This document shows positions 3,574 to 55,071 of a DNA stretch of 64,000 bases, one piece after another. Every line of letters starts with the position of its first letter. Positions within the stretch are counted from its first letter, which is position 1. Location: assembly GCF_039654945.1 (NCBI RefSeq), contig NW_027361957.1, positions 1,302,001 through 1,366,000 of the forward strand. Reading direction: 5' to 3'. Source of the DNA: Dendrobates tinctorius. Taxonomy: Eukaryota. Below the pieces are notes generated by a model. The model was not told the origin of the DNA, did no database searches, and worked only from the letters and a program-made list of their open reading frames with translations. Position numbers and translations under genes: made by a program.

Positions 3574-3793
3574 AGAAATTGGCTAGTGTATCACAAACTA
3601 CAAGGTGTATGTAGAATTGGGCAGAATTGGAATCTCCCTAGAGTGCAGGTCTGTAAGAACGGAACATGTCCTCGACTTATTCTCACAGAGTGACTCACTG
3701 ATAGCTTCACTGTGGCTGTGATAACAGCCGTTACACGGTACTGTGTGAGGAGCGTACACCGCTGTATGGTGTGAAAAAATGCACGCTCAGTAC

Positions 3794-4652
3794 CTCAGCA
3801 GGACAAAAAAAAAAATTGTGATTGCTTTTAAAAAAGCAGTTTGCGGAGCAGTGGGTAAACAGCAATGCAGGAATATCAGGAAGCCTTAGAAGGCAGCCCA
3901 ACAACCAACACCACTGATACACCACTATATAGCCTCCCCTTGCACTGCACAGTGACTGGTGTGTTGTACAGGCAAAATCGCTAGCAGCAGAAGCAGTTTT
4001 TTTTCTTCTTCTCAGCAGGACAAAAAAAAAAATTGGGATTGCTTTTAAAAAAGCAGTTTGCGGAGCAGTGGGTAAACAGCAATGCAGGAATGTCAGGAAG
4101 CCTTAGAAGGCAGCCCAACAACCAACACCACTGATACACCACTATATAGCCTCCCCTTGCACTGCACAGTGACTGGTGTGTTGTACAGGCAAAATCGCTA
4201 GCAGCAGAAGCAGTTTTTTTTCTTCTTCTCAGCAGGACAAAAAAAAAATTGGGATTGCTTTTAAAAAAGCAGTTTGCGGAGCAGTGGGTAAACAGCAATG
4301 CAGGAATGTCAGGAAGCCTTAGAAGGCAGCCCAACAACCAACACCACTGATACACCACTATATAGCCTCCCCTTGCACTGCACAGTGACTGGTGTGTTGT
4401 ACAGGCAAAATCGCTAGCAGCAGAAGCAGTTTTTTTTTCTTCTTCTCAGCAGGACAAAAAAAAAAATTGGGATTGCTTTTAAAAAAGCAGTTTGCGGAGC
4501 AGTGGGTAAACAGCAATGCAGGAATGTCAGGATGCCTTAGAAGGCAGCCCAACAACCAACACCACTGATACACCACTATATAGCCTCCCCTTGAACTGCA
4601 CAGTGACTGGTGTGTTGTACAGGCAAAATCGCTAGCAGCAGAAGCAGTTTTT
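3794..4652. repeat. ~217-bp tandem repeat (4 copies) inside the hAT element
   Basis: CTCAGCAGGACAAAAAAAAAAATTG recurs at about 3794, 4011, 4228 and 4445; units nearly identical. Confidence 0.95.
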
Positions 4653-5160
4653 GGTGTCTTCTTCCCTGCCTAACGCTCTCCCTACAAAATCAGCAGCAGC
4701 AGCATCTCTCCCTATTCTGAGATCAGCATGAGTAACATGGCAGTCGGCGTGCACGCCCTTTTATACCCCCTGTGACGCCCCCCAAAGCAAGCCAATCACT
4801 TGCATGCCCTTCTGAAAGATGGTGGTGACCCGTGCCTATGTCATCACGTTGCCCACAGTGTCCGTGGATCCTGATTGGCTGAAAAAGAGCGCAAAACAAA
4901 CTTTTGAAACGCGACTTTGGCGCGTAAGTCGCCAACCTCGTGGCCGACCTCATCCTAGGGTCGGGTTTCATTTCATGAAACCCGACTTTGCCAAAAGTCG
5001 CGACTTTTGAATTTTTTCGACCCGTTTCGCTCAACTCTACCTGTGGGTTCAAGGTGCTTACTACACACAAGATATTTTCCATGAGGGGTCTAGTTTCCAA
5101 AATAGTGTCACTTGTAGGAGGTTTCTTCTATTTAGACACTCATCTCTCAATCTCTCATCT

Positions 5161-25485: not shown

Positions 25486-26539
25486 ATACATGTACTGTAT
25501 AAATACTTAATGAAGAATATAAGCTCTGACATTCTTAGTGTACAGTTGCTAGGAAACCATCTGTCCATTATGTCAAATGTTGTAATGTTAATGTTGTATC
25601 CACTAACCATCCAAAGTAAATCATTCAGAGAGTTATACAGAAGGGAAATCTCTTTACTTTGAATTATATGCTTTGCAAGTATATTTCCTATCTTTAGTCA
25701 AATCTTTTGTCAGAAGAATTTCCACATAAATATTGATTGAAATATTTAATAAAAGCAAACAAATATTTTAACAATAAGTATAATCTAAGGTATAAACAAA
25801 ACAAACATATGCTTTACTTCCCGTAAAACATTATCTAGAACTATTACTTTTACTTTAATTACAATCATTTAACTTTCATTTAACTATTGTAATAGTTAGT
25901 GGTCTGTGGAGGCTTCACCACATCAGATAATGTGATGAACCATTAAGATGTTAGCATAGTTCAATATCAATTGATTTTTTGCTTATGTCTAAAGACTGAT
26001 TAAAGCTATTTATAGATTAACCATAATCTGTATTTTTGCCCTTTGCTGGGCAATAGTATATTCACCAAAGGATGAATTGTTCTGCAAAGTCTTGCAACAA
26101 AGGATCCTGATCAATGCAAAGTTAAAAAAATTGTGCATGAAATGTAATATTCCTGGGTAAATGAGCTTCATGATAGTTGGCCAAAATGTAATTCTGAATA
26201 TTATTGCAAGTGTATTACATTTACATGTAATGTTCTGGGGTTAATTTAACTCTCTCAGCCAGGACCAGATTTAACTAAAGGCATAGTAACTGTATATCCT
26301 ATGGAAGGACACTTACTACAAAAATAAAATAACCTGTTAATTAGTGTTGAGCATTCCGATACCGCAAGTATCGGGTATCGGCCGATACTTGCTGTATCGG
26401 AATTCCGATACCGACTTCCGATATTTTTTCAATATCGGAATTCGGCATCGGAATCGGAAGTTCAGTTGATTGACGGCCTGACGTCATCATGATGCGCGGT
26501 GTGTGCGCATCATGATGCGCCGTCATTTCGGGCCTTCCG

Positions 26540-26730
26540 GGGGTCTCTGCCGGCCTGCCGGGGGGCTGTGCCGGCCTGCCGGGGGGCTGTGTGGACTGCC
26601 CGGGGTCTGTACCGGACTGCCGGGGGGCTGTGCCGGCCTGCCGGTGGTCTGTGCACCCTGTGGGGGTCTGTACCGGCCTGCCGGGGGGCTGTGCCGGCCT
26701 GCCGGGGGGCTGTGCTGATGTCCGGGGGTC
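26540..26730. repeat. 21-bp GC-rich minisatellite GCCGGCCTGCCGGGGGGCTGT (mirrored at ~29460-29680)
   Basis: Direct reading; also at ~48055-48245 and ~50560-50780. Confidence 0.9.
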
Positions 26731-26886
26731 TGTGCAAGCATCGTCCGATGGGACTACAAGTCCCATCGGGCGATGCCTGCTACCATGACAGTGATTGACA
26801 CATTAGCCAATGATGGGACAGTAGTAGTCCCATCATCCGGCTAATGTGTTAAATGTTAAAAAAAAAAATAAAAAAAAAAAAAAAAA

Positions 26887-27760
26887 TACTACATACATAC
26901 TACATGCATGCTACATACATACTACATACATACTACATGCATGCTACATACATACTACATATATACTACATACATACTACATACATGCTACATACATACT
27001 GCATGCTACATACATACATACTACATACATACTACATGCATGCTACATACATACTACATATATACTACATACATGCTGCATGCTACATACATACTACATA
27101 CATACTACATACATGCTACATGCATGCTACATACATACTACATATATACTACATGCATGCTACATACATACTACATGCTACATACATACTACATATATAC
27201 TACATACATACTACATACATGCTACATACATACTGCATGCTACATACATACTACATACATACTACATGCATGCTACATACATACTACATATATACTACAT
27301 ACATACTACATACATGCTACATACATACTGCATGCTACATACATACATACTACATACATACTACATGCATGCTACATACATACTACATATATACTACATA
27401 CATGCTGCATGCTACATACATACTACATACATACTACATACATGCTACATGCATGCTACATACATACTACATATATACTACATGCATGCTACATACATAC
27501 TACATGCTACATACATACTACATATATACTACATACATACTACATACATGCTACATACATACTGCATGCTACATACATGCTACATACATACTACATACAT
27601 ACTACATACATACTACATGCATGCTACATACATACTACATGCATGCTACATACATACTACATGCATGCTACATACATACCACATACATACTACATGCTAC
27701 ATACATACCACATATATACTACATACATACAATACATTCATACAATACATACATAGACAT
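26887..27760. repeat. Compound TACA/TAC/TGCA satellite, left arm of copy 1
   Basis: Mosaic of 7/11-bp units (TACATACATAC, TACATGC). Confidence 0.95.
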
Positions 27761-28374
27761 ACAGTACATATAACATAGAGTAACATACTTACCAATACTT
27801 GTCACATTGTTCCCCGAAGCCATTGTCTATTCCGGGATAAATATTAACATAACAAACCACAAAAATACTCACCCACGATCCGAAGCAGTCCACGAGTGTG
27901 TCCCACGACGATCTTGGGTAGAGAACTGCAGCATCAGATGATGCTGCCGTTCTCTACGGGCTGCAGGAATCCAATGACGGAAGGTAGGTATCCTTCCGCA
28001 CTGTATTCCTCCGCCACTTAAAAAAAAAAAGTCCCTAGTCTCACTTTATGCCATTGCTGTGTGGGAATTTCCCACACAGCAATGGCATAAAGTGAGACTA
28101 GGGACTTTTTTTTTTTAAGTGGCGGAGGAATACAGTGCGGAAGGATACCTACCTTCCGTCATTGGATTCCTGCAGCCCGTAGAGAACGGCAGCATCATCT
28201 GATGCTGCAGTTCTCTACCCAAGATCGTCGTGGGACACACTCGTGGACGGCTTCGGATCGTGGGTGAGTATTTTTGTGGTTTGTTATGTTAATATTTATC
28301 CCGGAATAGACAATGGCTTCGGGGAACAATGTGACAAGTATTGGTAAGTATGTTACTCTATGTTATATGTACTG

Positions 28375-29311
28375 TATGTCTATGTATGTATTGTATGAAT
28401 GTATTGTATGTATGTAGTATATATGTGGTATGTATGTAGCATGTAGTATGTATGTGGTATGTATGTAGCATGCATGTAGTATGTATGTAGCATGCATGTA
28501 GTATGTATGTAGCATGCATGTTGTATGTATGTAGTATGTATGTAGTATGTATGTAGCATGTATGTAGCATGCAGTATGTATGTAGCATGTATGTAGTATG
28601 TATGTAGTATATATGTAGTATGTATGTAGCATGTAGTATGTATGTAGCATGCATGTAGTATATATGTAGTATGTATGTAGCATGCATGTAGCATGTATGT
28701 AGTATGTAGGTAGTATGTATGTAGCATGCAGCATGTATGTAGTATATATGTAGTATGTATGTAGCATGCATGTAGTATGTATGTAGTATGTATGTATGTA
28801 GCATGCTGTATGTATGTAGCATGTATGTAGTATGTATGTAGTATATATGTAGTATGTATGTAGCATGCATGTAGTATGTATGTAGTATGTATGTAGCATG
28901 CAGTATGTATGTAGCATGTATGTAGTATGTATGTAGTATATATGTAGTATGTATGTAGCATGTAGTATGTATGTAGCATGCATGTAGTATATATGTAGTA
29001 TGTATGTAGCATGCATGTAGCATGTATGTAGTATGTATGTAGTATGTATGTAGCATGCAGCATGTATGTAGTATATATGTAGTATGTATGTAGCATGCAT
29101 GTAGTATGTATGTAGTATGTATGTATGTAGCATGCAGTATGTATGTAGCATGTATGTAGTATGTATGTAGTATATATGTAGTATGTATGCAGCATGCATG
29201 TAGTATGTATGTAGTATGTATGTAGCATGCAGTATGTATGTAGCATGTATGTAGTATGTATGTAGCATGCATGTAGTATGTATGTAGCATGCATGTAGTA
29301 TGTATGTAGTA
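28375..29311. repeat. Compound TGTA/GTA/TGCA satellite, right arm of copy 1
   Basis: Reverse complement of the left array, slightly longer. Confidence 0.95.
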
Positions 29312-30597
29312 TTTTTTTTTTTTTTTTTATTTTTTTTTTTAACATTTAACACATTAGCCGGATGATGGGACTACTACTGTCCCATCATTGGCTAATGTGT
29401 CAATCACTGTCATGGTAGCAGGCATCGCCCGATGGGACTTGTAGTCCCATCGGACGATGCCTGCACAGACCCCCGGAGCCTGCACAGACCACCGGCAGGC
29501 CGGCACAGCCCCCCGGCAGGCCGGCACAGCCCCCCGGAGCCTGCACAGCCCCCCGGCAGGCCGGCACAGCCCCCCGGCAGGCCGGCACAGCCCCCCGGAG
29601 CCTGCACAGACCACCGGCAGGCCGGCACAGCCCACCGGAGCCTGCACAGACCCCCTGGCAGGCCGGCACAGCCCCCCGAAAGGCCCGTACAGACCCCAGA
29701 GAGGCTGTACAAGGGCAGGAAAGGGTTTTTCTTATTCCGATACCGGAAGTCCCATAGACTTGAATGGGACTTCCGGTATCGGAATCGGCGATACCGATAC
29801 TTTTTTTAAAGATCGGCCGATACCATCCGATACGATACTTTGAAGTATCGGACGGTATCGCTCAACTCTACTGTTAATTAAATCATGCTGTTATGGTAGT
29901 AATATTTTTTGTAATGGCTGGCAATTTTTTAAATAGACTATCTATACTAAATAGTGAATCTTACTACAGATGGGCGGACCCATGGATGTTCGGGTCCGGC
30001 GGAATAATTAAAAAAAGTTCGAGTTTGGTTACCAGAACAGTACCAAGACCCAAACCAGGACCCCATTCACTTAAATGGGGGATCAAAGATTGTTGTTTGC
30101 CATGCTGTCATGTGCATGACAGAGGGCAAACACTGCTTGTGATCTGTGGTAAAATCATTACCACAGGTCATATAGCCGCAGTTCCCATGGTGTCAAATGA
30201 CAGCGTGAGCCCGAAACTGTGATCAGAAGTATAAAGTTTATCAGCCAGCCAGGCAAAACTGACAGCTGGGAGCTGCAAACCTCAGCTGTTAGTGTTAGCA
30301 AAGCTTGTTATCAAGAATAGAGGGGTAACCTTGCTGTTTTTTTTAATTAATTAAATAAATAATTAAAAAAATGAAGTGGGGTCTTTTCATTTTTGCCAAC
30401 CAGACTTGGCAAAGCAGATTGCTGTGTGCTGGTATTTTTTAAATGATATATTTAGAGCGTAGGCACCAGCTGATGAATACTCCCATCAGTAACCTCCTGC
30501 TCTCATTATTATTAGTGGCAGCAGGCATAGTCTGATGTGAGCTGTGGTCCCATCAGATAGTGCCAGTGACCGGAGGTAAACTTTATACCTCCGATTA

Positions 30598-34744: not shown

Positions 34745-37700
34745 CCCGTCTTCTACGAGGGACCTCTGGACCCTCAAGACTCATAGGACCCGGCTTGTCC
34801 GGATGACGACGGTGAAAAGAACTGACCAGCCGATCCGCATGTATGTCTGAGGCTGGAACCCAAGACCTCTCCTCCGGACCATACCCCCGCCAGTGCACCA
34901 AATACTGAAGAGTACGGTGTACTACTCAAGAGTCCACTACCTTGGCGACCTCAAATTCTAAATCGCCATCCACCATGACTGGAGGTGGCATCGGCATCAC
35001 GTCCACAGAGCCTACCACCTTTTTCAATAAAGCTCTGTGAAACACTTTGTGTATCTTGTACACCGCAGGAAGTTCCAACCGATACGCCACTGGGTTAATG
35101 ATGGCAGAAATCCTAAAAGGCCCAATAAACCTTGGACCCAGTTTTAAAGATGGAATTTTGAGTCTTATGTTCTTCGTAGCTAACCACACCCATTCACCCA
35201 CACACAGGTCCGGACCTGGCACACGTCTACTGTCAGCCACCCGTTTGTACCTGGCACTCATGCTCAACAAACGCTGTTTCACCCGCCTCCAGACTGATGA
35301 CAATTGGGCTCCTAGCTGATCCTCCTCCGGGACACCCCCCGAGTCACCCTGACGTAAGGTACAAAACTGAGGATGTTGACCGTACACACAAAAGAATGGA
35401 GACTCTCCCGATGACTCTTGGCGGTGATTATTTAACGCAAATTCAGCCAGAGGAAGGAAAGTAGACCACTCCTCCTGGTTGTCGGACACAAAGCATCGTA
35501 AATATTGTTCTAGATTTTGGTTCATGCACTCAGTTTGTCCATTAGACTGTGGATGAAACGCCGATGAATGTGACAACTTGATCCCCAAACGTGAGCAAAA
35601 AGCTTTCCAAAACCTCGCTACAAATTGCGTACCCCTATCAGATACTATGTCCGATGGTACTCCGTGGAGTCTGACCACCTCCTTCACAAATACCTGAGCC
35701 AACGTCTTAGCATTGGGCAACGAAGACAACGCCATAAAATGCGCCATCTTTGAAAAACGGTCAACCACCACCAGGATGACCGTGTTTCCCGCCGAGGCTG
35801 GCAAGTCAGTGATGAAATCCATGGAGATTTCTGTCCATGGCCTATTGGGTACCCCCAGAGGCTGTAGCATGCCAGCAGGACGGGTACGGGGTGACTTAGC
35901 CCTAGCGCACGTGATGCAAGCTGCCACGTATGAGACCACGTCCTGCCGGATTTTGGGCCACCAGAAACGACGCGATACCAGCTCTAAGGTGCCCCTCACC
36001 CCTGGATGACCAGCCAGTACCGAGTCGTGGTGTTCCTTCAACACCTTAAGCCGAAGATGCAGGGGTACAAATGATTTGTTGGCGGGAAGTCCTGGTGGTA
36101 CCTCCTCTTGGGCCTCGGCAATCTCCGCCTCTACCTCCGTCGTGAGAGCCGAGACCACTACCCCTTTCTGGAGGATGGGTACCGGCTCTTCCCGAGGTTC
36201 TCCCCCCGGAAAACACCTAGACAAAGCATCCGCCTTGGTGTTTTTAGCTCCGGGACAGTAAGTCACCAGAAAATTGAAACGAGTAAAAAACAATGCCCAG
36301 CGAGCCTGCCTAGGAGACAGACGCTTGGCCGACTCCAGATAGAGCAGATTCTTATGGTCGGTGATGACTGTGACCTGGTGAGCCGCCCCCTCCAAGAAGT
36401 GTCGCCATTCCTCAAAAGCCAGTTTGATGGCCAACAACTCCCTGTTGCCGATATCATAATTCCGTTCGGCCGGCGACAGCTTCTTGGAGAAGTAGGCGCA
36501 TGGATGCATCTCGCTCAAGGACGAGCCTTGAGACAGTACTGCCCCCACTCCCACCTCCGACGCATCAACCTCCACCACAAAAGGTTTAGACACGTCTGGT
36601 TGCACCAGAATGGGGGCAGAAGCAAAACTATTCTTCAGACGCTCAAAGGCACGTATAGCCACCTCAGGCCAGTTCGCCAGATCGGCACCCTTTTTTGTCA
36701 TGTCCGTGAGCGGTTTGGCGATAGTCGAAAAGTGTTTTATAAACTTCCTATAATAATTCGCAAACCCAAGGAACCGCTGGAGTGCTTTCAGACTCTCCGG
36801 CCTCTCCCACTGCAGCACCGCTTGCACCTTAGCCGTGTCCATTTTAAACCCGGCTGCGGACACACTATATCCCAAAAAAGGGCAACTCCTGGACAAAAAA
36901 TAAACATTTTTCCAGCTTAGCATAGAGCTGGTTCTCCCGGAGCAACTGTAACTCCTGCCTGACATGCTCCAAATGAGTGTCCCGATCGCTAGAATAAATG
37001 AGGATATCATCCAGGTATACAATCACAAATCTCCCCAGGACATGAGCAAATACATCATTAATAAAATGTTGGAAAACGGCAGGCGCGGTGGTCAACCCAA
37101 ACGGCATAACCAGACTCTCAAAATGACCCTCAGGAGTGTTAAACGCCATCTTCCACTCATCCCCCTGACGGACCCTTATGAGGTTATACGCCCCCTGAGG
37201 TCCAGCTTGGAAAACCATTTCGCCCCCGCTACCTGGTTGAACAAATCCGGGATTAACGGCATAGGGTAAGGATCACGGATAGTAATCTGGTTTAACTCTC
37301 GGAAATCCAGACATGGGCGCAACCCCCCATCTTTCTTCTTAATGAAGAAAAACCCCGCAGCTACAGGCGAGGACGAAGGCCGGATGTGTCCTTTGCTCAG
37401 ACTCTCCGCGATGTAGTCTTTCAGAGCTTGTCTCTCAGGACCAGAAATATAAAACATCCTGGCCTTAGGTAATTTGGCCCCGGGTTTTAACCTGATCGCA
37501 CAGTCATAGGCTCTATGTGGAGGCAGTTCTGAGCAACCCTTCTCAGAGAAAACATCTGCGAAATCCTGCAAAGCCTCCGGCAGGCTGGGCGTCACGGCAG
37601 ACACACATGTGGCCAAGCAATTGTCTTGGCAAAAACCACTCCATTGTACTATGTCCTGAGTTTTCCAATCAATTACTGGGTTGTGTCTGGACAACCATGG

Positions 37701-38060
37701 AAAACCCAGGACCATTTGTGCTGGGAGATTACGGAGGACCCTACATGTAACCGACTCAGAATGTAGGACCCCAATGTGGAGTTTCACCTCTGCCACAAAC
37801 TCCGTAATCTCCCCTTGAGGGAGGGGAACAGCATTAATGGTCACCACCTGTATGGGGTGAGGAAGTCTTTCAATCTTAAACCCGGCGGTGTGTGCAAACT
37901 CCTCATCTATGAGATTGGTGGCGGAACCGCTATCCACAAACACTGATATTGGTAGCTCTCTGCCCGCGATAATAACCTTGGCAGGGAGCATACATTGAGA
38001 TACCATCATGGAGGATATGCATACGCTCAGTTGGGTCTCCTCCATACCCTCTGAGCTTAA
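34745..38060 (-). pseudogene. Outer Gypsy pol (protease FVDSGS, RT YLDD, RNase H, integrase, GPF, chromodomain), frameshifted
   Basis: ORFs 37176-38045, 36865-37218, 34926-37022 and 34692-34901 tile a single pol. Confidence 0.93.
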
Positions 38061-38772
38061 CAGTTTTCCGCCAATGTGACCCTCTTAGGTAGTACCGGGC
38101 AAACGTTAATATAATGACCTCTTTTACCACAGTAGAAACATGCTCCGGGCTTCCGGAATCCCGGAGCGCGACGCTTAACCTGTGCCACGCCAGCAATCTG
38201 CATAAGTTCAGGGGACTCATCTACTTCAACCACACTTGCACCTCTGCTTTCCCCCAGAGGTAGCGTCTCCTGTGCCCCCTGACGAAAACGGCGATCAATA
38301 CGTATCACCAAACTCATGGCAGACTCCAACGATGCCGGAGTCTCATACATCAGGAGGGCCTGTTTAACCCTCCCTGACACCCCATGCATAAACTGGCTCC
38401 GCAGCGCTGGGTCATTCCACTGTGTGTCTACGGCCCAGCGGCGAAATTCCGAACAATAGTCCTCTGCCAAGCGCTCCCCCTGGCAGAGGGCGCGGATTTT
38501 AGATTCCGCTAGAGCCAGTCGGTCAGGATCATCATAAATGAGTCCGAGGGCAGAAAAAACATTATCAACAGAAAGAAATGTAGCAGAGTCAGCTGGTAAG
38601 GAAAATGCCCATGCTTGGGGGTCACCACTCAGTAATGACAACACCAGCCCTACCCGCTGGGCCTCATTACGTGCGGAGATAGGGCGCATGCGGAAGTATA
38701 ACTTGCAGGCCTCCCGAAATACGACAAATTTGCTGCGATCCCCTGAAAAACGTTCTGGCAGCGGAAACTTCG

Positions 38773-41700
38773 TGTCAAAGACACCGCACTACACTTGCTC
38801 ATAGAGCCAGTGCACGTGTCCTGAGTACAGAAGCAGTGCTAAGAGTTACCTGGGGAGCAGGGCAGCAGAGGTGACAAAGCGTGCTTCAAGCTAATAGTGT
38901 CAGGGTCAGAGAACTCAGATTATGGCAAAGTAGAAGTCATGCACAGTACAGACCAGCGAGGTACAGGAGAGATAAACAGATGGGAGGTCAGACAAAGCCA
39001 AAGGTCATACACAGGATCACAGTACAGTACCAGGGAGGAGACAGAGCGGATAATCAGGGCCAAGCAGAGATCAAAGCCAAACAGACATATAAGGTACCAG
39101 GCAGAATCCAAAGCGATATCCAGGGAACACACCGAGTCATACACAGAGAATCAAGTAACCAGAACACAGCACTAACACACTCAGGGGTCACCACACAATG
39201 CCAAGGGCGAAAGTATAACTGACAGGGATGGGAGCGTCCTGAGGCTATAAGAAACCTCCCCCAGAACCAGGGAGAGGCCACAATCACAGCCCCAGGTGTG
39301 CAGGTAAGCCTGCACCAGGATCACAACCTTTAACCCCAGAAATGCCAGTCATCAGCACTGGTTCCAAACATTAACCCCACGTGTGCGAGTCAAACCCGCA
39401 CTGAGATCATGACAGTACCCCCCTCTCAACGGGGGGCCTCTGGACCCCCAGGCTTGCCCGGGTACTTAGCATGGAAAGCCCGCACCAGGCGATCAGCATG
39501 CATCAACCGGGCTGGTACCCAGGACCTGTCCTCTGGTCCATACCCTTTCCAATGAACCAGGTACTGTACCGACCGCCGTACCAACCTGGAATCTACGATA
39601 TGACCAACCTCGTACTCCACCTGCCCCTCGACCAAAACCGGAGGAGCAGCAGACTCGGAGTCTCCCCGTACTGCTTCAAAAGGTTTCAGTAGAGATTTGT
39701 GGAAGACGTTAGGGATCTTGAAAGAGGGTGGAAGGCACAGCCTATACGCCACTGGATTGATTTTTTCCACAATCTTGTACGGGCCAATGAATTTGGGTCC
39801 CAACTTGGCTGACGGAATCTTTAACTTAATGTTTCGCGTGGAGAGCCAAACTTTCTCTCCCACCCGAAACATGGGACCAGGTGTTCGTTTCCTGTCCGCG
39901 AAAAACTTATACCTGCCTTGAGACCTAGATATACGCCGCTGGGCTTCTGCCCATGTATCTTTTAACCGCTGAACAGAATCCTCAGCCCCGGGACACCCCG
40001 AATCCAGACGAGAAAACTCACCAAAATGAGGACTGAACCCATAGTTAATCAAGAAAGGGGACCTACCAGTGGATTGACTCACCCGACTATTGAAGGCAAA
40101 TTCAGCCAACGGCAGTGCATCGCACCAGTCATTCTGTCTAGCAGAGGTTAGACACCTGAGGATCTGTTCCAGGGACTGGTTAGTGCGCTCCGTCTGCCCA
40201 TTGCTCTCAGGATGGTATGCAGACGAAAAGGACAGAGACATACCTAATTTTTTGCAGAAAACACGCCAAAACTTAGCCACAAACTGCACACCACGATCAG
40301 ACACCACATTCAGGGGTACCCCATGCAACCGGATCACATGCTGCACAAACAACCTGGACAACGTCTCAGCTGACGGTAGTGCGGACAGGGGTACGAAATG
40401 AGCCTGCTTAGAAAACCTGTCCACCACTACCCATACCACTGTATTACCCTTAGATGGAGGGAGATTGGTAACAAAATCCATGGATAAATGAGTCCATGGC
40501 CTTTCGGGCACTGCCAAGGGTATCAGCTCCCCTGCCGGCCGGCTATGAGAGATTTTAGAACGAGCGCAGACCCCACAACCAGCAATGAATTTTTTTATGT
40601 CCGAACCAAGGGTAGGCCACCAAAAGATCCTAGCCACCGCCAGACGTGTGGCTGAAATACCAGGGTGAGCACTCAGCTTGGATTCATGGAACTCCTGCAA
40701 GAGTTTCAGGCGAAGTTGCTCTGGGACAAACAACTTCCCCTCCGGCTTGGCCGCCGAGGCCTGCGACTGGGCCCCCAGAATCTCCCGTTCCAATTCAGAT
40801 GAGACCTCTGCTATCACAACCCCAGGGTGAAGAATGGAGGACGGTGGCTCAGGGGGCGACACAGGCTGAAAACTGCGTGATAAGGCGTCAGCCTTGACAT
40901 TCTTAGACCCTGGACGAAATGTAATCGTAAACTGAAAACGGGAAAAAAAAAGTGACCAACGGGCCTGTCTGGGCGTTAGTCTTTTAGCAGACTCAATGTA
41001 CGACAGATTTTTGTGATCCGTGATCACCGTAACCGGGTGACTGGCCCCCTCCAAAAAGTGCCTCCATTCTTCAAACACCAATTTGACCGCAAGAAGCTCT
41101 CTATTGCCTACGTCGTAATTTCTTTCCGCAGCAGAGAACTTCTTGGAAAAGAAAGCACATGGCCTGAGGTTGGTTAGAGTGGCAGGCCCTTGGGACAACA
41201 CCGCCCCCACCCCCACCTCAGAGGCGTCCACTTCCACGACGAATGGTTTGGACGGATCTGGCTGCACTAACACAGGAGCAGACATAAAACATTTTTTCAG
41301 CGTTGCAAAGGCCTCTTTTGCGAGCGAGGACCAATTTCTCACATCCGCACCTTTGCATGTTAGATCCGTGAGAGGTTTGACCACTTGCGAAAACCCCCGG
41401 ATAAACTTGCGGTAATAATTGGTGAACCCCAAGAAGCGCTGAAGACCCTTAAGATCTCGGGGTTGCACCCAATCCGCAATGGCCTGCACCTTCTTGGGGT
41501 CCATGCGAAAACCCTCACCGGATACAATTAACCCCAAAAAGGACAACTCTTGTACACAGAATACACATTTCTCCAATTTGGCATACAAATGATTTTCTCT
41601 AAGCCTTTGGAGCACAGTTCGTACATGTTCCAAATGAGAATACTTGTCGGGGGAATATATCAAAATATCATCTAAGTAGATAACGACAAAATGACCAATG

Positions 41701-44355
41701 AGATCCGAGAATACCACGTTGATGAAATTCTGAAATATGGCAGGGGCGTTGGTAAGACCAAACGGCATGACTAAATTTTCAAATAGTCCCTCGGTCGTGA
41801 GGAACGCGGTTTTCCATTCATCCCCCTCCCGGACCCTTATCAAATTATATGCCCCCGAAGGTCCAGTTTAGAAAACCACTTTGCCCCTGATAGTTGGTTA
41901 CATAAATCGGTAATCAACGGAAGGGGGTACGTATTCCGTATAGTAATTTCATTAAGCTCCCGGAAGTCGAGACAGGGACATAACCCGCCATCTTTTTTCT
42001 TTACAAAAAAGAAACCTGCCGCAACAGGTGAGACTGAAGGACGTATGTGTCCTTTGCGCAGACTTTCAGTAATGTACTCCTTCATAGCCAAGCGCTCAGG
42101 ACCAGACAAATTAAACAGACGGGCTTTGGGTAATTTAGCCCCCGGGACCAGCTCAATAGCGCAGTCAAAGGGTCTATGTGGCGGTAACGTCTCGGCCTCG
42201 CTTTCGGAGAATACATCTTCGAAGTCCTTCAGGCATTCCGGAATACCTTCCAGCTCGACAGATGATACAGACACAGATTTAACTGGTTCAACCAGCAGTG
42301 CGGATTTATCACATAACTCAAAATCATTAAACCCCCATTGAACAATCTCCCCCGTTTTCCAGTTAATAACTGGGTTATGGCGTTGTAACCAGGGCATGCC
42401 CAACACCAACCCTGCAGGTAGATTGTCCAGCACAAAACAACTTATGTTTTCCACATGAATAGCGCCCACTCTGAGCGAAAACACATCAGACATAAAGCGA
42501 ATTCCCTCCTTAGTGAGGGGAGATGAGTCAATGGCCATCACCTTGATCGGAACCTTGAGCCTAACTGTCCCTATCTTGCAGTGTGTGACCAATTGGGAGT
42601 CAATGAGGTTAATAGATGATCCGCAGTCGATGAAGGCTGTAGAGGAAAAAGAACTACCGTCCACAAATAGTTCCACAGGCAGTAATACTTTAGAAAACGA
42701 GGAAAATGGTACCTGAGGGTCTGAGCAGCCTCCCCGTTGACTACCCAGACCTAGTCGTTTCCCGCCGACCGGGTTTGAAGACGGGCAATTCGGGCACTCC
42801 CTTTTCCAATGTCCCGTTTTAGCGCAGTAAAAGCATAGCTGCTTGTCCTTCCGGCGTTTCCTCTCTGTATCCTTCAGGGAGAGGGCGCCTACATCCATGG
42901 GCTCAGGGGCAGTCTCTTTTCCACTGGGGAATAATGGAGTATCCACCTGCATCACCCCTCTGGCCCGCAGTCTGCGGTCCATCCGGACGGCCTGGGTCAT
43001 GGCGTCCTCGAGAGAGTTAGGTGGGGGATGTAACGCCAAGGCATCCTGCAGCCGCTCGGACAAGCCTCTGCGAAAGAGTCCGCGGAGTGCGGCGTCGCTC
43101 CAAGAGACCTCTGCCGCCCAGCGGCGGAACTCAGAACAAAACCACTCAGCTGAATGTTTCCCCTGACAGACACTCATCAACATGTCCTCTGCCAATCGCA
43201 CTCGGTCAGGTTCATCATAAATGTGCCCAAGGGCCTCAAAGAATGCGTTCACTGACATACGTTCAGGAGCAGAGGAAGACAGAGAGAAAGCCCATGCTTG
43301 CGGAGCCCCCGAAGTAGGGAAATAATGACCCCCACCCTCTGGAACTCATCCCCGGAGGAGCGGGGCCTTAGAGAAAAAAAAAGCTTGCATCCTTCTCTGA
43401 AAGACCTGAACTCCTTTTTGTCCCCTGAGAAAAAGTCTGGCAATTTGACCGGAGATTCGGGGGACGCTAATGACACATCCCTACCCCCAGAACTAGAAGC
43501 CCCTGCATCGACAGCCTCCTGCACAGTAACCACCAACTGTTGCTGGGTCTGGGCCATCGTGCGTTGTTCCACATTGAGCTTATGGAACATTTGGGTCAGG
43601 TGCTTGACCTGATCAGACAAGGCTTGTATGGGATCCATGAGGATAACACACACCTTTTTTTTTTTTTTTTTTCTTCAGAAAAAAAAAAAAAAACTGAAAT
43701 GGTCAGTTATAATGTCAAAGACACCGCACTACACTTGCTCATAGAGCCAGTGCACGTGTCCTGAGTACAGAAGCAGTGCTAAGAGTTACCTGGGGAGCAG
43801 GGCAGCAGAGGTGACAAAGCGTGCTTCAAGCTAATAGTGTCAGGGTCCAGAGAACTCAGATTATGGCAAAGTAGAAGTCATGCACAGTACAGACCAGCGA
43901 GGTACAGGAGAGATAAACAGATGGGAGGTCAGACAAAGCCAAAGGTCATACACAGGATCACAGTACAGTACCAGGGAGGAGACAGAGCGGATAATAAGGG
44001 CCAAGCAGAGATCAAAACCAAACAGACATATAAGGTACCAGGCAGAATCCAAAGCGATATCCAGGGAACAGACCGAGTCATACACAGACAAACAAGTAAC
44101 CAGAACACAGCACTAACACACTCAGGGGTCACCACACAATGCCAAGGGCGAAAGTATAACTGACAGGGATGGGAGCGTCCTGAGGCTATAAGAAGCCTCC
44201 CCCAGAACCAGGGAGAGGCCACAATCACAGCCCCAGGTGTGCAGGTAAGCCTGCACCAGGATCACAACCTTTAACCCCAGAAATGCCAGTCATCAGCACT
44301 GGTTCCAAACATTAACCCCACGTGTGCGAGTCAAACCCGCACTGAGATCATGACA
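38773..44355 (-). mobile_element. Inner Gypsy chromovirus; LTRs 38773-39414 and 43713-44355
   Basis: TG..CA LTRs of ~642 bp; TSD CTTCG; PPT GAGAGGGGGGTAC. Confidence 0.96.
39426..43638 (-). pseudogene. Inner Gypsy gag-pol, near-intact (frameshifts at ~43305 and ~41850)
   Basis: MDPIQALSDQV.., CFYCAKTGHWKREC, FIDCGS, YLDD, integrase, GPY, chromodomain YEVGHIVDSR..YLVHWKGY. Confidence 0.93.
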
Positions 44356-45227
44356 CTTCGGCTCTGCACCGATACCTGCAGATGCCGTTTGCACCTTCGC
44401 TACTACCAGGCCCTGCTGCTGAACTGCCCCTTTCAACTCGGAGACCTGTAAGGACAGCGCCGCCAACTGGCGGGTTATGGAATCTAATGGATCCATGGAC
44501 TCCTGAAAAAATGTGGGCCGATTATAATGTCACGTGGGGCTTAGTCCCACTAAGGCTGTAATACTCGGGGGCCCTGTGATGTCCCTATAACTAGGGAAAA
44601 CCCTGTCTGACCCTCAACCCAGGGTTTTTGCTGATGGTGTAAATGCCTGAGCCTCCAACCTTTCCTTGTCTCCTGCTCAGCCCTGCACTTAACCCTCCAC
44701 CCTCCACCCAGTGAGGAGACACACCACCAAAGCCCCCACACAAATAAAGACAGACAGGGAGAACTTAAACTGCGCTGCGCCACACACACACAGGAATATG
44801 AACAGTAATGTGAACAAAGCACAACTAAGCACAAATATGGGAAGGAGAAAAGATAACGACGGATCATACGACACCAGATACAAATCTCTCTCTGCAACAC
44901 CTCCACTCCAGACCGGAACCACTTGGTATGAAACACAAGCTATAATCGGCGACTCCCATAGGCCAGCATGACTATTTAAAGACCATGGGCGTGACTAACC
45001 ATCCAACCTGGTCTCCAGCAGGATTAACCCCCGAGAGCCTGAAGATCAGGCAGGCGCCACTGAGGCTATAGTGGCTGGAGGTGGAACTACCTCTGCCTGC
45101 CGGACGCTGTGGTGTGAACAGCGTCCGACATGACACCACCTTAGAAGTCTCCAGTGCTTTCTCTCAAACCATTTTCTGTGCTTTTTGAAGTGTATTTTGG
45201 GTCATTGTCCTGCTGGAAGACCCATTA

Positions 45228-46007
<780 letters not shown>

Positions 46008-47854
46008 TCAACTGGCTGCAAGTGTGATTTAGTTATTGCCAACACCTGTTAGGTGCCACAGGTAAGTTACAGGTGCTGTTAATGAAACAAATTAGAGAAG
46101 CATCACATGATTTTTCGAACAGTGCCAATACTTTTGTCCACCCTCTTTTATGTTTGGTGTGGAATTATATCCAATTTGGCTTTATGACAATTCTTTTTGT
46201 GTTTTTTTCATTTAAGACAAATTAAATGAAGATAATAATACCAAAGAATTTGTGTTTGCAATCATTTTCAGGAAGAAACTGAGTACTATCTGACAAAATT
46301 GCAGGGGTGTCAATACTTTTGGCCACAACTGTAAGTGGAAATTTCGCAAACAAATGTATTGCAATAGTGGCATCCTGTTACATATTATGTCAAATTCAGT
46401 GAGCACATTAGAATGAGCCATTCTATCACATGTTTTTGTAAAGGCAGACTCTTGGATAGGGGCTTGTTTTGATAAGCCAGTAGCAATGGGAATAAATATC
46501 AATAGTTTACTGATTTGTCCCAATATTTTGTACATATAGTATTCAGTGTGTCATACAAATAAGTGTAACATTAAGACCTTTTCTTACACTGCCTTGTTGC
46601 TTTGTTTGTACATTTATCCACCACTGTCTGCAGAGGCATAGCTATCTTTTCTTCACAAACATTTAGTTCAGCGCACCTCTTCATTTCAATCCCAGAAAAT
46701 GCTGTTTAATGGAATGGTTGTGTGTATGCATTCAAACTATTCCACTCAAATAGGATACAAGAGACCACCATTGTTTTGACTAGTGGGGATCCTAGAGGTT
46801 GGACCTTCAGGTATCACTGATTTTTTTTAAGCTAAATGCACTCATGTACTGTTTTCTTACTGTGACTGCACTCATAGACTTTGTATACTTTCCCGTTACT
46901 TACTCTGATACTTCCCTTTGCTATTAGTTTCTGCCTAACCACATCTCTTCAAGGTCTCTCACTAGACTTCACACCTAAGGATACACCAGCCTATCAAGTT
47001 CTCTGGTATTGACAATCAAAATCTCGTCATCTCCTTCTTCAGTTATTTAATAACACATAGATGAGGAGAAACAAGTGCATAGTTCAACATACTCAGAAAG
47101 CTCAAATCTCCTCTTGTCTTTCGAGCCCCAAATAAAAAAGGAAGGAAGAGTCAGTGATCGTAAGTGAGGGCAGGGTAGGTGCAGCCAATGTCTGTGCTTC
47201 ACTAGTTAATATGGTAACAACCTGGACGACTGATAAATGTCACTATATGACCAGCAAGCCTACATATCACTGATTATGAAGCATGCTAATGTTAGCTGCT
47301 TTAATTAAATACTGTTTTTATTTGAAAATATTAAATGTATTAAAGTACTTTACTTAAACTTTTATGGCAATTTCCTTAAGGCATATTGAAAATGATTTAA
47401 TATTCTGCATTAACTGAAGTATCAATCTGTTCTCAAAAGATGTGTCCACTAAAGGTCAGAACGAGAAGTTGTTACCAATAGAATGTTTCTAATTTCTATG
47501 ATAAATTATTAGAAGAAGTCTACAGAAGAATCTGTAAAATATCAGTGCATTCAATGATTTTAGAATAGCATCACCTCTTTCCTAGTCTTTGCATGTCTCC
47601 AATTTGGGGATTATAGATGGAAAAGCTTTAACAACCGCTCTTGGGATTTGACAGAGAAGATGACCTATAGCACATTTTTCTATCCAGTAAGGTTACATTA
47701 TCTCTTTATTGACTTTTCAAAGTCTTGACTCTTCTTTTGCCGAAGCCTAAAATATGTATTTAGGAAAAGGTACTGTATGTAGTGTGGTGAAGAATGAAAA
47801 TGTTTTGCAAAAAAAGCTTACACTATTGGGTTGAATTGAAATAATGCTTACAAC

Positions 47855-50800
47855 TAGTGTTGAGCATTCCGATACCGCAAGTATCGGGTATCGGCCGATA
47901 CTTGCTGTATCGGAATTCCGATACCGACTTCCGATATTTTTTCAATATCGGAATTCGGCATCGGAATCGGAAGTTCAGTTGATTGACGGCCTGACGTCAT
48001 CATGATGCGCGGTGTGTGCGCATCATGATGCGCCGTCATTTCGGGCCTTCCGGGGGTCTCTGCCGGCCTGCCGGGGGGCTGTGCTGGCCTGCCGGGGGGC
48101 TGTGTGGACTGCCCGGGGTCTGTACCGGCCTGCCGGGGGGCTGTGCCGGCCTGCCGGTGGTCTGTGCACCCTGTGGGGGTCTGTACCGGCCTGCCGGGGG
48201 GCTGTGCCGGCCTGCCGGGGGGCTGTGCTGATGTCCGGGGGTCTGTGCAAGCATCGTCCGATGGGACTACAAGTCCCATCGGGCGATGCCTGCTACCATG
48301 ACAGTGATTGACACATTAGCCAATGATGGGACAGTAGTAGTCCCATCATCCGGCTAATGTGTTAAATGTTAAAAAAAAAAAAAAAAAATACTACATACAT
48401 ACTACATGCATGCTACATACATACTACATGCTACATACATACTACATATATACTACATACATACTACATACATGCTACATACATACTACATGCATGCTAC
48501 ATACATACTACATGCTACATACATACTACATGCATGCTACATACATACTACATATATACTACATACATGCTACATACATACTGCATGCTACATACATACT
48601 ACATACATACTACATACATACTACATGCATGCTACATACATACTACATATATACTACATGCATGCTACATACATACTACATGCTACATACATACTACATA
48701 TATACTACATACATACTACATACATGCTACATACATACTGCATGCTACATACATACTACATACATACTACATACATACTACATGCATGCTACATACATAC
48801 TACATGCTACATACATACCACATACATACTACATACATACTACATACATACTACATGCTACATACATACTACATATATACTACATACATGCTACATACAT
48901 ACTACATGCTACATACATACCACATACATACTACATACATGCTACATATATACTACATGCATGCTACATACATTCATACAATACATACATAGACATACAG
49001 TACATATAACATAGAGTAACATACTTACCAATACTTGTCACATTGTTCCCCGAAGCCATTGTCTTTTCCGGAATAAATATTAACATAACAAACCACAAAA
49101 ATACTCATCCGAAGCAGTCCACGAGTGTGTCCCATGACGATCTTGGGTAGAGAACTGCAGCATCAGAATTTCCCACACAGCAATGGCATAAAGTGAGACT
49201 AGGGACTTTTTTTTTTTAAGTGGCGGAGGAATACAGTGCGGAAGGATACCTACCTTCCGTCATTGGATTCCTGCAGCCCGTAGAGAACGGCAGCAACAGC
49301 TGATGCTGCAGTTCTCTACCCAAGATCGTCGTGGGACACACTCGTGGACTGCTTCGGATCGTGGGTGAGTATTTTTGTGGTTTGTTATGTTAATATTTAT
49401 TCCGGAAAAGACAATGGCTTCGGGGAACAATGTGACAAGTATTGGTAAGTATGTTACTCTATGTTATATGTACTGTATGTCTATGTATGTATTGTATGAA
49501 TGTATTGTATGTATGTAGTATATATGTGGTATGTATGTAGCATGTAGTATGTATGTAGTATGTATGTAGCATGCATGTAGCATGTAGTATGTATGTAGCA
49601 TGCATGTAGTATATATGTAGTATGTATGTAGCATGCATGTAGTATATATGTAGCATGTATGTAGTATGTATGTGGTATGTATGTAGCATGTAGTATGTAT
49701 GTAGCATGTATGTAGTATATATGTAGTATGTATGTAGCATGTAGTATGTATGTAGTATGTATGTGCTATGTATGTAGCATGTAGTATGTATGTAGCATGC
49801 ATGTAGTATATATGTAGTATGTATGTAGCATGTAGTATGTATGCAGTATGTATGTAGTATGTATGTGGTATGTATGTAGCATGTAGTATGTATGTAGCAT
49901 GCATGTAGTATATATGTAGTATGTAGTATGTATGTAGTATGTATGTGGTATGTATGTAGCATGTAGTATGTATGTAGCATGCATGTAGCACGCATGTAGT
50001 ATGTATGTAGCATGCATGTAGTATGTATGTAGCATGCATGTAGTATGTATGTAGTATGTATGTAGTATGTATATAGCATGCAGTATGTATGTAGCATGTA
50101 TGTAGTATGTATGTAGTATATATGTAGTATGTATGTAGCATGTAGTATGTATGTAGCATGCATGTAGTATATATGTAGTATGTATGTAGCATGCATGTAG
50201 TATGTATGTAGTATGTATGTAGTATGTATGTAGCATGCAGTATGTAGTATATATGTAGTATGTATGTAGCATGCATGTAGTATGTATGTAGCATGTAGTA
50301 TGTATGTAGCATGCATGTAGTATGCATGTAGCATGTATGTAGTATGTATGTAGTATATATGTAGTATGTATGTAGCATGTAATATGTATGTAGCATGCAT
50401 GTAGTATGTATGTAGTATTTTTTTTTTTATTTTTTTTTTTAACATTTAACACATTAGCCGGATGATGGGACTACTACTGTCCCATCATTGGCTAATGTGT
50501 CAATCACTGTCATGGTAGCAGGCATCGCCCGATGGGACTTGTAGTCCCATCGGACGATGCCTGCACAGACCCCCGGAGCCTGCACAGCCCCCCGGCAGGC
50601 CGGCACAGCCCCCCGGAGCCTGCACAGCCCCCCGGCAGGCCGGCACAGCCCCCCGGCAGGCCAGCACAGCCCCCCGGCAGGCCGGCACAGCCCCCCGGAG
50701 CCTGCACAGACCACCGGCAGGCCGGCACAGACCACCGGAGCCTGCACAGACCCCCTGGCAGGCCGGCACAGCCCCCCGAAAGGCCCGTACAGACCCCAGA

Positions 50801-50970
50801 GAGGCTGTACAAGGGCAGGAAAGGGTTTTTCTTATTCCGATACCGGAAGTCCCATAGACTTGAATGGGACTTCCGGTATCGGAATCGGCGATACCGATAC
50901 TTTTTTTAAAGATCGGCCGATACCATCCGATACGATACTTTGAAGTATCGGACGGTATCGCTCAACTCTA
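47855..50970. mobile_element. Non-autonomous hAT element with a giant internal inverted repeat (copy 2)
   Basis: Same ends as copy 1; 8-bp TSD CTTACAAC; satellites at ~48388-48995 and ~49475-50417; 128-bp deletion beside the centre. Confidence 0.93.
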
Positions 50971-51944
50971 CTTACAACGTGTCTCGATACAACAGTGCGC
51001 AAAGGTTAGGTAAATCCTTTCTCATACTTACTATGTTACATAAGTACATTGGTCCTGCGATGTGCATACAAATCAAATATTTTACATTTTACACCTTTTA
51101 ACTCTTGAGTAGCAATATGGGTCATATTTTATAGGGTGCCAAAAGACAAATTTCGAAGCAGTTGAAATGCTGTATGTCAGCTTTATGTGGTGAACTACAC
51201 GTCACACTATATTTGGCTTTTTTTTTTTTTTGCTTTGTCTTTCATGACCTTCCAATATGAATCTAATCTAATCCAAGACTAGCCCTTATGAGCATTTGCC
51301 ATTTTTACCTGTAATTATGCCAGCTTTAAATGTAGTGAAATTACTTTATAATTTCACACTATTTCTGATTTTTACAGCAGCTGAATATCCCTTTGTACAC
51401 ATTCATCTTATTTGACTATAATTGCTCTATATAACCTAATGATTATTGTCTTTGGGTTAGCAATGTACTATTGTATAGGAACTCATCAGTGAGGTGGAAA
51501 ATTTGAGGAATGAGAAGAAGCTCTCCATTGTACATCAGTGAGTTTCCTGTGTCATAGCTTTACTTGTTATCATTTATTTGGGTGGCATTACATTATTTTC
51601 TCTTTAACTATGTATTCTGTAAACATTAAAGTAGTTTAAATGAACAAAATCAGTAAGTTTTTTATTCTACCAGAGTTAACTTCTTTTAAGAGCATAAACA
51701 CAAAAACAAAGGAAAAGGTTTAATAAACCAGATCACTGTTTTGGCTCAAGGTGTGTAGAGGCATAGAGCAGTATTGTGACCAAACGCAATTAATCGAGAG
51801 AAAAAAAGAAAGGGTTAATTTCAGCTCCTTTTAACAAGTAATACTTTAACTCCTAAACCATTTCACAACCTTGCAATTTTTCATTTTTGCACTTTTGTTT
51901 TGTGCTCCCCTTCTTCCCAGAGCCATAACTTTTTTTTTCTTCTA

Positions 51945-55065: not shown

Positions 55066-55071
55066 TGTGTA

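Follow-up and report, generated by a model that had tools for sequence, protein, structure and literature searches.

Ordinary non-autonomous hAT transposons, such as Ds-type elements and hAT MITEs, have short terminal inverted repeats (TIRs), an 8-bp target-site duplication (TSD) and subterminal repeats, carry no transposase and are mobilised in trans. The hAT target consensus is nTnnnnAn, and the short TIRs start with the consensus (T/C)A(A/G)NG. Long spacerless palindromes are textbook fragile DNA, and according to Cunningham et al. 2003, whom PMC3300023 and PMC7680136 both cite, they reportedly undergo centre-break revision, in which a one-sided deletion with microhomology ends at the centre. 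The ampliconic palindromes of the human Y chromosome show gene conversion from arm to arm. The same process has been described for the sex-chromosome palindromes of willow (PMC7023750), closely spaced inverted repeats are counter-selected (PMC3300023), and no palindrome longer than 618 bp has been reported from the human reference genome (PMC7680136). Elements of the foldback (FB) type are mostly assigned to the Mutator superfamily, with TSDs of 8–10 bp, and the foldback form is thought to have arisen independently in different transposon lineages (PMC4079207). Work on Galileo, a member of the P superfamily, describes one 9,021-bp copy without a transposase segment, composed solely of two TIRs (4,246 and 4,680 bp) in which tandem repeats lie (PMC4168063). 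Foldback transposons are already known (FB, Galileo, Tetris); the hAT-borne, spacerless, kilobase-scale vertebrate form described below is new beside those named.

The window analysed, a stretch of 64,000 nucleotides from the dyeing poison frog Dendrobates tinctorius (contig NW_027361957.1, positions 1,302,001 to 1,366,000), contains two copies of this element. By the features of its sequence, namely the TSDs, the TIRs and clustered subterminal repeats, the first copy (copy 1; 26342–29870, 3,529 bp) is a non-autonomous hAT-type transposon, and the original prediction that hAT TIRs and an 8-bp TSD bound it was borne out (features are given on the + strand; the TSDs and the palindrome centre have no strand). 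The TSD, CTGTTAAT, stands on both sides (26334–26341 and 29871–29878) and fits nTnnnnAn. Perfect 8-bp TSDs flank both copies, CTGTTAAT at copy 1 and CTTACAAC at copy 2, each with T as its second and A as its seventh base (n = 2 sites). The 11-nt TIRs, TAGTGTTGAGC on the left (26342–26352) and TAGAGTTGAGC, read as the reverse complement, on the right (29860–29870), match at 10 of 11 positions, begin with TAGTG/TAGAG and agree with the hAT consensus for TIR starts. The motif CGATAC/GTATCG, clustered at both ends in the hAT manner, occurs six times in the 189-bp left end (26342–26530) and nine times in the 173-bp right end (29698–29870), as against none in the 3.1-kb interior and eight in the other 57 kb. 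Each end also holds a hairpin (26478–26530 with a 14-bp stem on the left; 29738–29781 with an 18-bp stem on the right). The left end is 100% identical to that of copy 2. It does not mirror the right end; compared as mirrors, the two ends are about 50% alike. A CRE-like motif, TGACGTCA, lies in the left-end hairpin and occurs in the left end only.

The interior between these two ends of about 180 bp is one inverted duplication with a single-base centre, and copy 1 is thus a foldback-type element on a hAT chassis, with long arms, two tandem arrays per arm and 1 nt at the centre. Moving inwards, the left arm comprises a G-rich minisatellite (26531–26737, nine copies of a 21-nt unit), a module of two hairpins (26738–26857) with a 29-nt A run (26858–26886), a satellite with an 11-nt period (ATACTACATAC; 26887–27734, 848 nt) and a unique core of 333 nt (27735–28067) that contains a local 17-bp hairpin (27918–27957). 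Beyond the central T at 28068, the right core (28069–28401) mirrors 27735–28067 with 1 mismatch (27887/28249), the right satellite (28402–29311, 910 nt) has 4 mismatches to the left one and extends 62 nt farther at its outer end, the T run and two-hairpin module (29312–29460) mirror 26738–26886 perfectly, and a C-rich minisatellite (29461–29697, 11.7 copies) closes the arm. The single T at 28068 and the fixed order of modules in each arm had both been predicted, and both are confirmed: the ungapped inverted repeat pairs 26894–28067 with 28069–29242 (1,174 nt at 99% complementarity, the arms 1 nt apart). Once gaps are permitted, the near-perfect zone, in which the two-hairpin module is outermost, extends over 26738–28067 and 28069–29460 (arms of 1,330 nt) with 5 mismatches and one 62-nt indel. 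The near-perfect symmetry had been claimed from ~26540 to ~29680, which holds for 26738–29460 but not for the outer arms, where 26531–26737 and 29461–29697 are 88% alike and carry indels. The full arms (26531–28067 and 28069–29697) make up about 90% of the element. The two module hairpins have folding energies of −23.3 and −21.5 kcal/mol (z about −9), and the 667-nt core is predicted to fold as one hairpin (−433 kcal/mol, against −72 ± 4 for shuffles).

Like ordinary non-autonomous hATs, the element has short TIRs, an 8-bp TSD and subterminal repeats and is devoid of transposase; whereas the interiors of those elements are what deletions have left behind or filler of unrelated sequence, it has a palindrome of 2.7–3.1 kb inside. 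The designation MITE is ruled out by size (3,529 and 3,116 bp, against under about 800 bp). With the FB-like elements of Drosophila, Tetris included, it shares a modular, non-coding organization of variable length, with two long inverted arms that contain tandem repeats (PMC4079207). It differs from them in its hAT-type TIRs, its nTnnnnAn 8-bp TSDs, its hAT-style subterminal repeats and its vertebrate host, and also in being least mirror-like in the outermost ~180 bp and most so at the centre.

The second copy (47847–50978 including the TSDs, element 47855–50970, + strand; 3,116 bp) lies 21 kb away. It has a TSD of its own, CTTACAAC, as had been predicted, and its flanks have no similarity to those of copy 1. 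The order of modules is identical, the termini of the two copies are 100% identical, and the copies differ by about 1%, the arms within copy 1 by about 0.4%. Since the TSDs differ, the flanks are unrelated and the termini are identical, the element has been inserted in its entirety on at least two occasions. The further claim that the palindrome itself transposes as a unit is not supported in the form first given, for the palindrome of copy 2 is not intact: the centre motif of copy 1 occurs just once in the window, so copy 2 is without a spacerless centre. Its left arm is short of 128 nt beside the centre, 7 nt of the core and 135, 91 and 122 nt of the satellite, and the sole large gap outside that arm is 15 nt missing from the right one. 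The 128-nt deletion shows GA microhomology and has its left end within the 4-nt loop of the hairpin at 27918–27957, so that the junction at 49166/49167 joins the local-hairpin loop to within 1–2 nt of the centre and leaves about 133 nt unpaired. A one-sided deletion that ends at the centre with 2 nt of microhomology is the outcome described for centre-break revision. Engineered and pathological palindromes, however, disappear or undergo revision in the course of generations or cell divisions, whereas the spacerless 2.7-kb palindrome of the frog persists. Because copy 2 is not intact, the window alone does not show the spacerless form surviving transposition; that conclusion rests on read contigs that cross palindromic centres.

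Comparison of the two full copies, that is, of four arms, revealed a pattern of two zones. The inner arms are closer to each other within a copy than to the same side of the other copy, and the outer arms show the reverse. In the core there is 1 mismatch within a copy against 3–5 between copies. The satellites, whose alignments are non-unique, differ within a copy by 4 mismatches and 1 gap block (copy 1) or 3 mismatches and 4 gap blocks (copy 2), but by 11–12 gap blocks between copies on the same side, and the non-homopolymer part of 26738–26886 is identical in all four arms. The minisatellites, by contrast, are 88% alike within a copy and 99% (left against left) and 96.6% alike between copies on the same side. 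At 27829 and 27836 both arms of copy 1 read A,G and both arms of copy 2 read T,A, the family majority among read contigs; these are the only two copy-specific core sites shared by both arms, and they are linked, 7 nt apart. The pattern, then, is one of concerted evolution within each copy over the inner ~1.33 kb of each arm (core, satellite and hairpin module) and of old side-specific differences retained in the outer minisatellites, and this division points to DNA-level copying from arm to arm in the inner zone. Assembly polishing can also raise the apparent likeness of inverted arms. Sex-chromosome palindromes are similar in that DNA copying between the arms keeps them far more alike than their age predicts, yet they have arms of 10 kb to megabases and kilobase-scale spacers, bear genes and are fixed in place, whereas the frog element is mobile, spacerless and non-coding, with 1.3–1.6-kb arms and very many copies.

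The abundance of the family and the reality of its centre were assessed with contigs, not raw reads, from public sequencing runs mapped to the 657-nt core (Logan contigs, 60–230 nt long over the repeat). Run X1, which may derive from the same sample as the assembly, yielded 2,163 contigs on the core, and contigs from three other studies were found as well. The element belongs to a very high-copy family in the frog, in line with the genome-wide foldback-like hAT family that had been proposed. Contigs of X1 cross the centre, one of them at a word depth of 731, and variant palindromic centres are present in X1, X8 and X17; since several variants of the palindromic centre exist, it does not stem from faulty assembly, and the fold-back read artefact raised as a concern in the original prediction is improbable. 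Six of the 10 contig joints abut or span the centre, in keeping with the decay proposed for copy 2, although 1,763 of the 2,163 X1 contigs fit both arms, so that mirrored variants and some joints could be mapping effects. The mirrored variants at 27941/28195, 27946/28190 and 27963/28173 were discarded as evidence of concerted change, since the majority of contigs can be placed on either arm. Neither the left end nor hairpin 1 had an exact match in the metagenome contigs scanned, and exact look-ups of three spurious ORFs of the element brought up no further copies. The genome papers on the dyeing and strawberry poison frogs name hAT only as a class, with no foldback, palindrome or inverted repeat. 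Galileo is likewise a cut-and-paste family that has yielded kilobase-scale foldback derivatives; however, it belongs to the P superfamily, has TSDs of 7–8 bp, and its long-TIR copies are rare individual variants instead of a high-copy family, with no single-base centre described there (PMC4168063).

We give a probability of roughly 70% to the reading that these elements form a high-copy, non-autonomous hAT-type foldback family in which the inner arms are copied from arm to arm and of which copy 2 is a decayed member. A hAT transposase acting in trans would cut and paste the element, recognising the 11-nt TIRs and the CGATAC repeats, and DNA-level copying between the arms would be confined to the inner zone next to the centre. 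The copying might proceed by mismatch repair once a hairpin or cruciform has been extruded, by gene conversion from arm to arm, or by fold-back template switching during gap repair after excision. Copy 2 would have decayed through one-sided deletions, one of them running from the local-hairpin loop to the centre, as would be expected if a hairpin tip had been broken and rejoined, an outcome that stabilises the sequence. A bolder extension, which we put forward tentatively, is that the palindrome is self-symmetrising, a process started at the centre keeping ~1.3 kb per arm identical in very many copies; repair templated on the extruded hairpin or cruciform, or fold-back synthesis in post-excision gap repair, would be the candidates. 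If so, the frog germ line tolerates, and even regenerates, kilobase-scale spacerless palindromes of the kind that bacteria, yeast and mammals remove, and the genome would hold a natural library of palindromes at every stage of decay.

The direction of change between the two copies could also be the reverse. An ancestor with a loop of ~130 nt, like that of copy 2, might have given rise to the spacerless copy 1 through a secondary inverted duplication, the template having been switched at a pair of short inverted repeats, namely the centre and the local hairpin. The 128-nt difference begins at one hairpin tip and ends at another, as it also would after U-turn template switching, and a contig of the independent run X10, from a diverged subfamily, joins the local-hairpin region to the centre at a slightly different position. 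That junction is nevertheless off by several bases, as an independent deletion would be; centre-crossing contigs reach a word depth of 731 while the exact junction of copy 2 is absent among the joints listed; and four further one-sided deletions in the left arm of copy 2 indicate an arm that is decaying generally. We consider this order of events unlikely.

That the family seeds cruciforms and long hairpin RNA, as the original prediction has it, is at most a putative role. Selection on RNA is still less probable as the reason for the likeness of the arms. Here transcripts would fold into a hairpin of ~1.5 kb and feed siRNA or piRNA pathways, for example silencing the family or its transposase source in the manner of Mu killer, and the arms would be kept alike on that account. 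The strand is indeed predicted to fold into a near-perfect hairpin, one run, tentatively taken for RNA, yielded short contigs alone on the core, and the CRE-like TGACGTCA is found solely in the left end. No public run on record as RNA holds the element, however, and the arms consist of satellites, hairpins and a non-coding core, with no transposase sequence in them. A search of Rfam gave no match at the gathering threshold; the sub-threshold miRNA matches at the centre were to generic perfect-hairpin models, on structure only, and were rejected. Selection by itself cannot create the same new change on both arms, and DNA-level copying is therefore needed in any case.

That the palindrome of copy 1, or the near-identity of its arms, stems from fold-back chimeric reads or cross-mapping between arms is the least probable account of all. 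In its favour, reads and assemblies are known to go wrong at long palindromes, the runs in which the element is best represented (X1–X4) may be the assembly's own sample, and the centre bin is lowest or nearly lowest in three other runs. Against it, the element around the palindrome has distinct left and right ends and a perfect 8-bp TSD, and its flanks are not palindromic; copy 2, 21 kb away, has the same mirror architecture and its own TSD; contigs assembled from raw reads with 31-mers run through the centre at high multiplicity; diverged palindromic centres occur in other studies; and chimeric reads are not expected to recur at one position.

A foldback family on a hAT chassis adds hAT to the transposon lineages known to have produced foldback elements. 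Its abundant 2.7-kb palindromes with a one-base centre would constitute a natural experiment on replication, on breakage (through the one-sided deletions adjacent to the centre) and on the likeness of arms. Two kinds of tandem repeat have been spread through a giant genome by one transposon, and anyone who sequences or assembles amphibian genomes, or annotates their repeats, may be misled by elements of this sort.

The element itself is non-coding. Two long ORFs (26846–27778 and 28358–29352) were rejected as genes because they are frames that the 11-nt satellite happens to leave open. We found no autonomous partner whose subterminal repeats are CGATAC; the element of the window that bears a transposase (3–5039) has other subterminal repeats and two in-frame stops. 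Nor did we find the marks of a Mutator-Foldback element (Mutator-type ends, TSDs typically of 9 bp, a MULE source). The length of the 8-bp TSD would not by itself exclude that class, but in both TIR and TSD the pattern is hAT-like, and a BED/hAT-like ORF goes with the same TIR. This ORF, with its BED finger, is carried by the element at 3–5039, which shares the same 11-nt TIR and has a weak Hermes/ZBED1-like core: among solved structures the ORF matches Hermes transposase alone (E 0.02), and the Atlas clusters closest to it are ZBED1/hAT RNase-H-like.

The element at 26342-29870 (copy 1; 3,529 bp) is a real feature, a member of a foldback-type non-autonomous hAT family with a spacerless, kilobase-scale palindrome, a decayed sister copy and homogenized inner arms. 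As the original prediction had it, the unit is bounded by hAT-like TIRs (left, TAGTGTTGAGC; right, TAGAGTTGAGC as the reverse complement) and an 8-bp TSD, here two perfect copies of CTGTTAAT, and is centred on a single T at 28068: an ungapped inverted repeat pairs 26894-28067 with 28069-29242 (1,174 nt, 99% complementary), with only that base between the arms. The predicted order of modules was also recovered in each arm. From the outside inwards, these are a G-rich minisatellite with a 21-nt unit (9 copies in the left arm and 11.7 in the right), a pair of short hairpins (as DNA, -23.3 and -21.5 kcal/mol; z about -9), a run of 29 A, a satellite with an 11-nt period (848 nt on the left, 910 nt on the right) and a unique core of 333 nt. 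Upon folding, the 667-nt double core forms a single hairpin of -433 kcal/mol, compared with -72 +/- 4 for shuffled sequences; a palindrome with these modules and this fold cannot have arisen by chance.

Close inspection reveals that mirror likeness is graded along copy 1. In a gapped alignment, the near-perfect zone extends over 26738-28067 (1,330 nt) and 28069-29460 (1,392 nt), with five mismatches (26946, 27329, 27427, 27614 and 27887) and a single 62-nt indel at the satellite's outer edge. Near-perfect pairing had been proposed for the whole interval from ~26540 to ~29680; this holds for the inner 1.33 kb alone (99.6-100% as assembled), whereas likeness drops to 88%, with indels, in the minisatellites and to about 50% in the terminal 189 and 173 bp, which have little in common beyond short repeats.

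Five small hairpins share the inverted motif ATGGGAC...GTCCCAT: two in each arm (26748-26766 and 26813-26833, with mirrors in 29365-29450) and one in the right end only (29749-29770). Since there are just three occurrences in the other 57 kb of the window, the motif may serve to bind a protein. In both copies, the left-end hairpin has at its base a perfect CRE-like palindrome, TGACGTCA (26479-26486 and 47992-47999), which has no counterpart in the right end of the element.

The centre was also found in public sequencing runs whose contigs were placed on the core. Contigs of run X1 (which, like X2-X4, may come from the same sample as the assembly) span it (records 6 and 7; depth 731 for record 7), a second centre variant is present, on the left side, in loose ends of X1, X8 and X17, and X17 holds a third, diverged palindromic centre. 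Because centre-spanning words recur many times over in the raw data of more than one study, a one-off fold-back read artefact, named at the outset as what might undo the prediction, is ruled out at the centre. In three runs of other studies, depth is at or close to its minimum in the bin at or beside the centre (in X8, 4.7 as against several hundred to about 1,600 over most of the left arm), unlike in X1, where the centre bins are among the deepest. The low depth possibly reflects a library-dependent loss of snap-back DNA or a higher diversity of sequences there.

Both TSDs are 8 bp long and carry T as their second and A as their seventh base, and the TIRs start with TAGTG/TAGAG, features that are signatures of the hAT superfamily. 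The hexamer CGATAC or its complement is found six times in the left end and nine times in the right; it is absent from the 3.1-kb interior and occurs eight times in the remaining 57 kb. Such clustering of subterminal repeats is typical of hAT ends. The element contains no gene; the long ORFs scanned as candidates were rejected, being open frames of the satellite. On sequence grounds, its 11-nt TIR type is tied to a putative hAT transposase through another element in the window (3-5039), which ends in the same TIR (GCTCAACTCTA, plus strand, 5029-5039). That element has one minus-strand frame, running from 2978 to the window edge at 3 with in-frame stops at 2289-2291 and 1260-1262, which contains a BED zinc finger (E 3.5e-12). 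Among solved structures its sole matches are to the Hermes transposase (E 0.02, a weak likeness of the core), and the Atlas clusters closest to it are ZBED1-like and hAT RNase-H-like (score 0.95). The 3-5039 element is probably not the helper of the foldback family, since their subterminal repeats differ, and the foldback element is classified as a non-autonomous hAT. Minus-strand ORFs with near-identical starts at 3925, 4358 and 4576 point to a likely tandem repeat between the ORF and the end of the 3-5039 element.

The second family member (copy 2; 47855-50970, 3,116 bp, TSD CTTACAAC) follows the same plan. The flanks of the two copies have no mutual BLAST match, their TSDs differ, their termini are 100% identical and they diverge at 16 of 1,573 non-satellite positions (1.0%), and so they are independent, fairly recent insertions of the whole unit. 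The claim that the palindrome moves as a unit therefore stands for the unit itself but, within the window, is not shown for its spacerless centre, which is absent from copy 2 (the centre motif of copy 1 was found once in the window). Twenty public runs from eight studies, under one organism label, each contain part of the stretch, and in small runs some 30% of its words are present, close to the proportion of the query that the element makes up. Because of the satellite, contig placement was restricted to a 657-nt core (27740-28396), which drew 2,163 contigs in X1, with summed word depths of 1e5-8e5 that do not equal copy number, and 413, 27 and 35 contigs in X10, X8 and X17, all from other studies. 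From these contigs we conclude only that the family is very abundant, with many sequence variants.

In copy 2, 128 nt adjoining the centre and 7 nt of the core are missing from the left arm, as are 135, 91 and 122 nt of the satellite; the right arm is full-length, and about 133 nt at the centre are unpaired. The 128-nt deletion corresponds to copy 1 positions 27939-28066 and has a 2-nt GA microhomology at its junction (49166/49167). Both ends lie at hairpin tips, because the left one falls in the 4-nt loop of a local 17-bp hairpin (27918-27957, -17 kcal/mol) and the right one 1-2 nt from the centre. Among contig joints on the core, which on short contigs of a palindrome can be mis-splits, 6 of 10 abut or span the centre. 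In one X10 contig, which belongs to a diverged subfamily, the region of this local hairpin is likewise joined to the centre, a few bases off the copy 2 junction, and an X17 contig has satellite sequence adjoining 28060. This suggests that one-sided, centre-adjacent deletions are recurrent in the family and structure-guided. The centre-break model of palindrome revision, for which PMC3300023 and PMC7680136 cite Cunningham et al. (2003), reportedly predicts such a deletion after a hairpin has been cut at its tip and its ends joined again. The match with this expectation suggests that copy 2 is a decayed palindrome; the reverse direction, in which its long-loop form would be ancestral and the perfect centre of copy 1 secondary, seems improbable to us.

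Comparisons within and between copies separate two zones. The outer minisatellites differ by 2 mismatches in 207 between the left arms and are 96.6% identical between the right arms, whereas the two arms of the same copy are only 88% alike. The satellite arms differ by 4 mismatches and one gap block within copy 1 and by 3 mismatches and four gap blocks within copy 2, as against 11-12 gap blocks and up to 35 mismatches between same-side arms of the two copies; in the core, there is 1 mismatch between the arms of one copy and there are 3-5 between copies. Judging from these alignments, the arms of the inner zone (hairpin module, satellite and core) appear homogenized within each copy, and the outer minisatellites side-specific. 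At sites 27829/27836, copy 1 has A,G and copy 2 has T,A, in each case on both of its arms. As T,A is the family majority in X1 (245,448 of 263,189 and 276,841 of 322,117), copy 1 has the derived state on both arms. A change in one arm reaches the other only by DNA copying; selection and shared descent were rejected as causes, as neither transfers a change from arm to arm. Such copying would have nucleated at the centre and been halted by the diverged minisatellites, which fits the steady rise in arm likeness from the ends to the centre. The copying may have taken place through repair acting on a hairpin or cruciform that had been extruded, through conversion between the arms, or through fold-back template switching as a gap left by excision was repaired.

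Foldback elements are a long-known class, placed for the most part in the Mutator superfamily; independent origins of the form, through transposase loss and TIR elongation, are considered likely (PMC4079207). One 9-kb copy of Galileo (P superfamily) is built solely from two TIRs of 4.2-4.7 kb that contain tandem repeats (PMC4168063), and the arms of Tetris contain tandem repeats that seeded a satellite (PMC4079207). In contrast to these known foldbacks, the present element has a hAT chassis, a single-base centre together with very high copy number in a vertebrate, an inverted identity gradient (ends least mirror-like, centre most) and evidence of concerted inner-arm change. The literature searched describes neither a hAT foldback nor this family, and the dyeing and strawberry poison frog genome papers, in which hAT figures only as a class, mention no hAT foldback. 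For the human reference, the maximum palindrome length reported is 618 bp (PMC7680136), and closely spaced inverted repeats are counter-selected (PMC3300023).

Cruciforms and hairpin RNA are plausible candidate consequences of this structure. We saw no evidence of a host function in RNA runs or Rfam: among the public runs matching the stretch, none on record as RNA contains the element (in one run taken for RNA by guess, short contigs match the core, but these could be DNA), and the element has no Rfam match above threshold. At gathering thresholds, Rfam detects no family in the whole window, and thus no curated hammerhead model reaches threshold at 55071-55450. The remainder of the window is mostly other transposons (34926-43258 and 45225-45995, minus strand; 52698-54065 and 61864-63399, plus strand), including two adjacent or nested Ty3/Gypsy-type pol regions with protease, RT, RNase H and integrase, one of them with a chromodomain, a Tc1/Sleeping-Beauty-like HTH fragment and two reverse-transcriptase ORFs.
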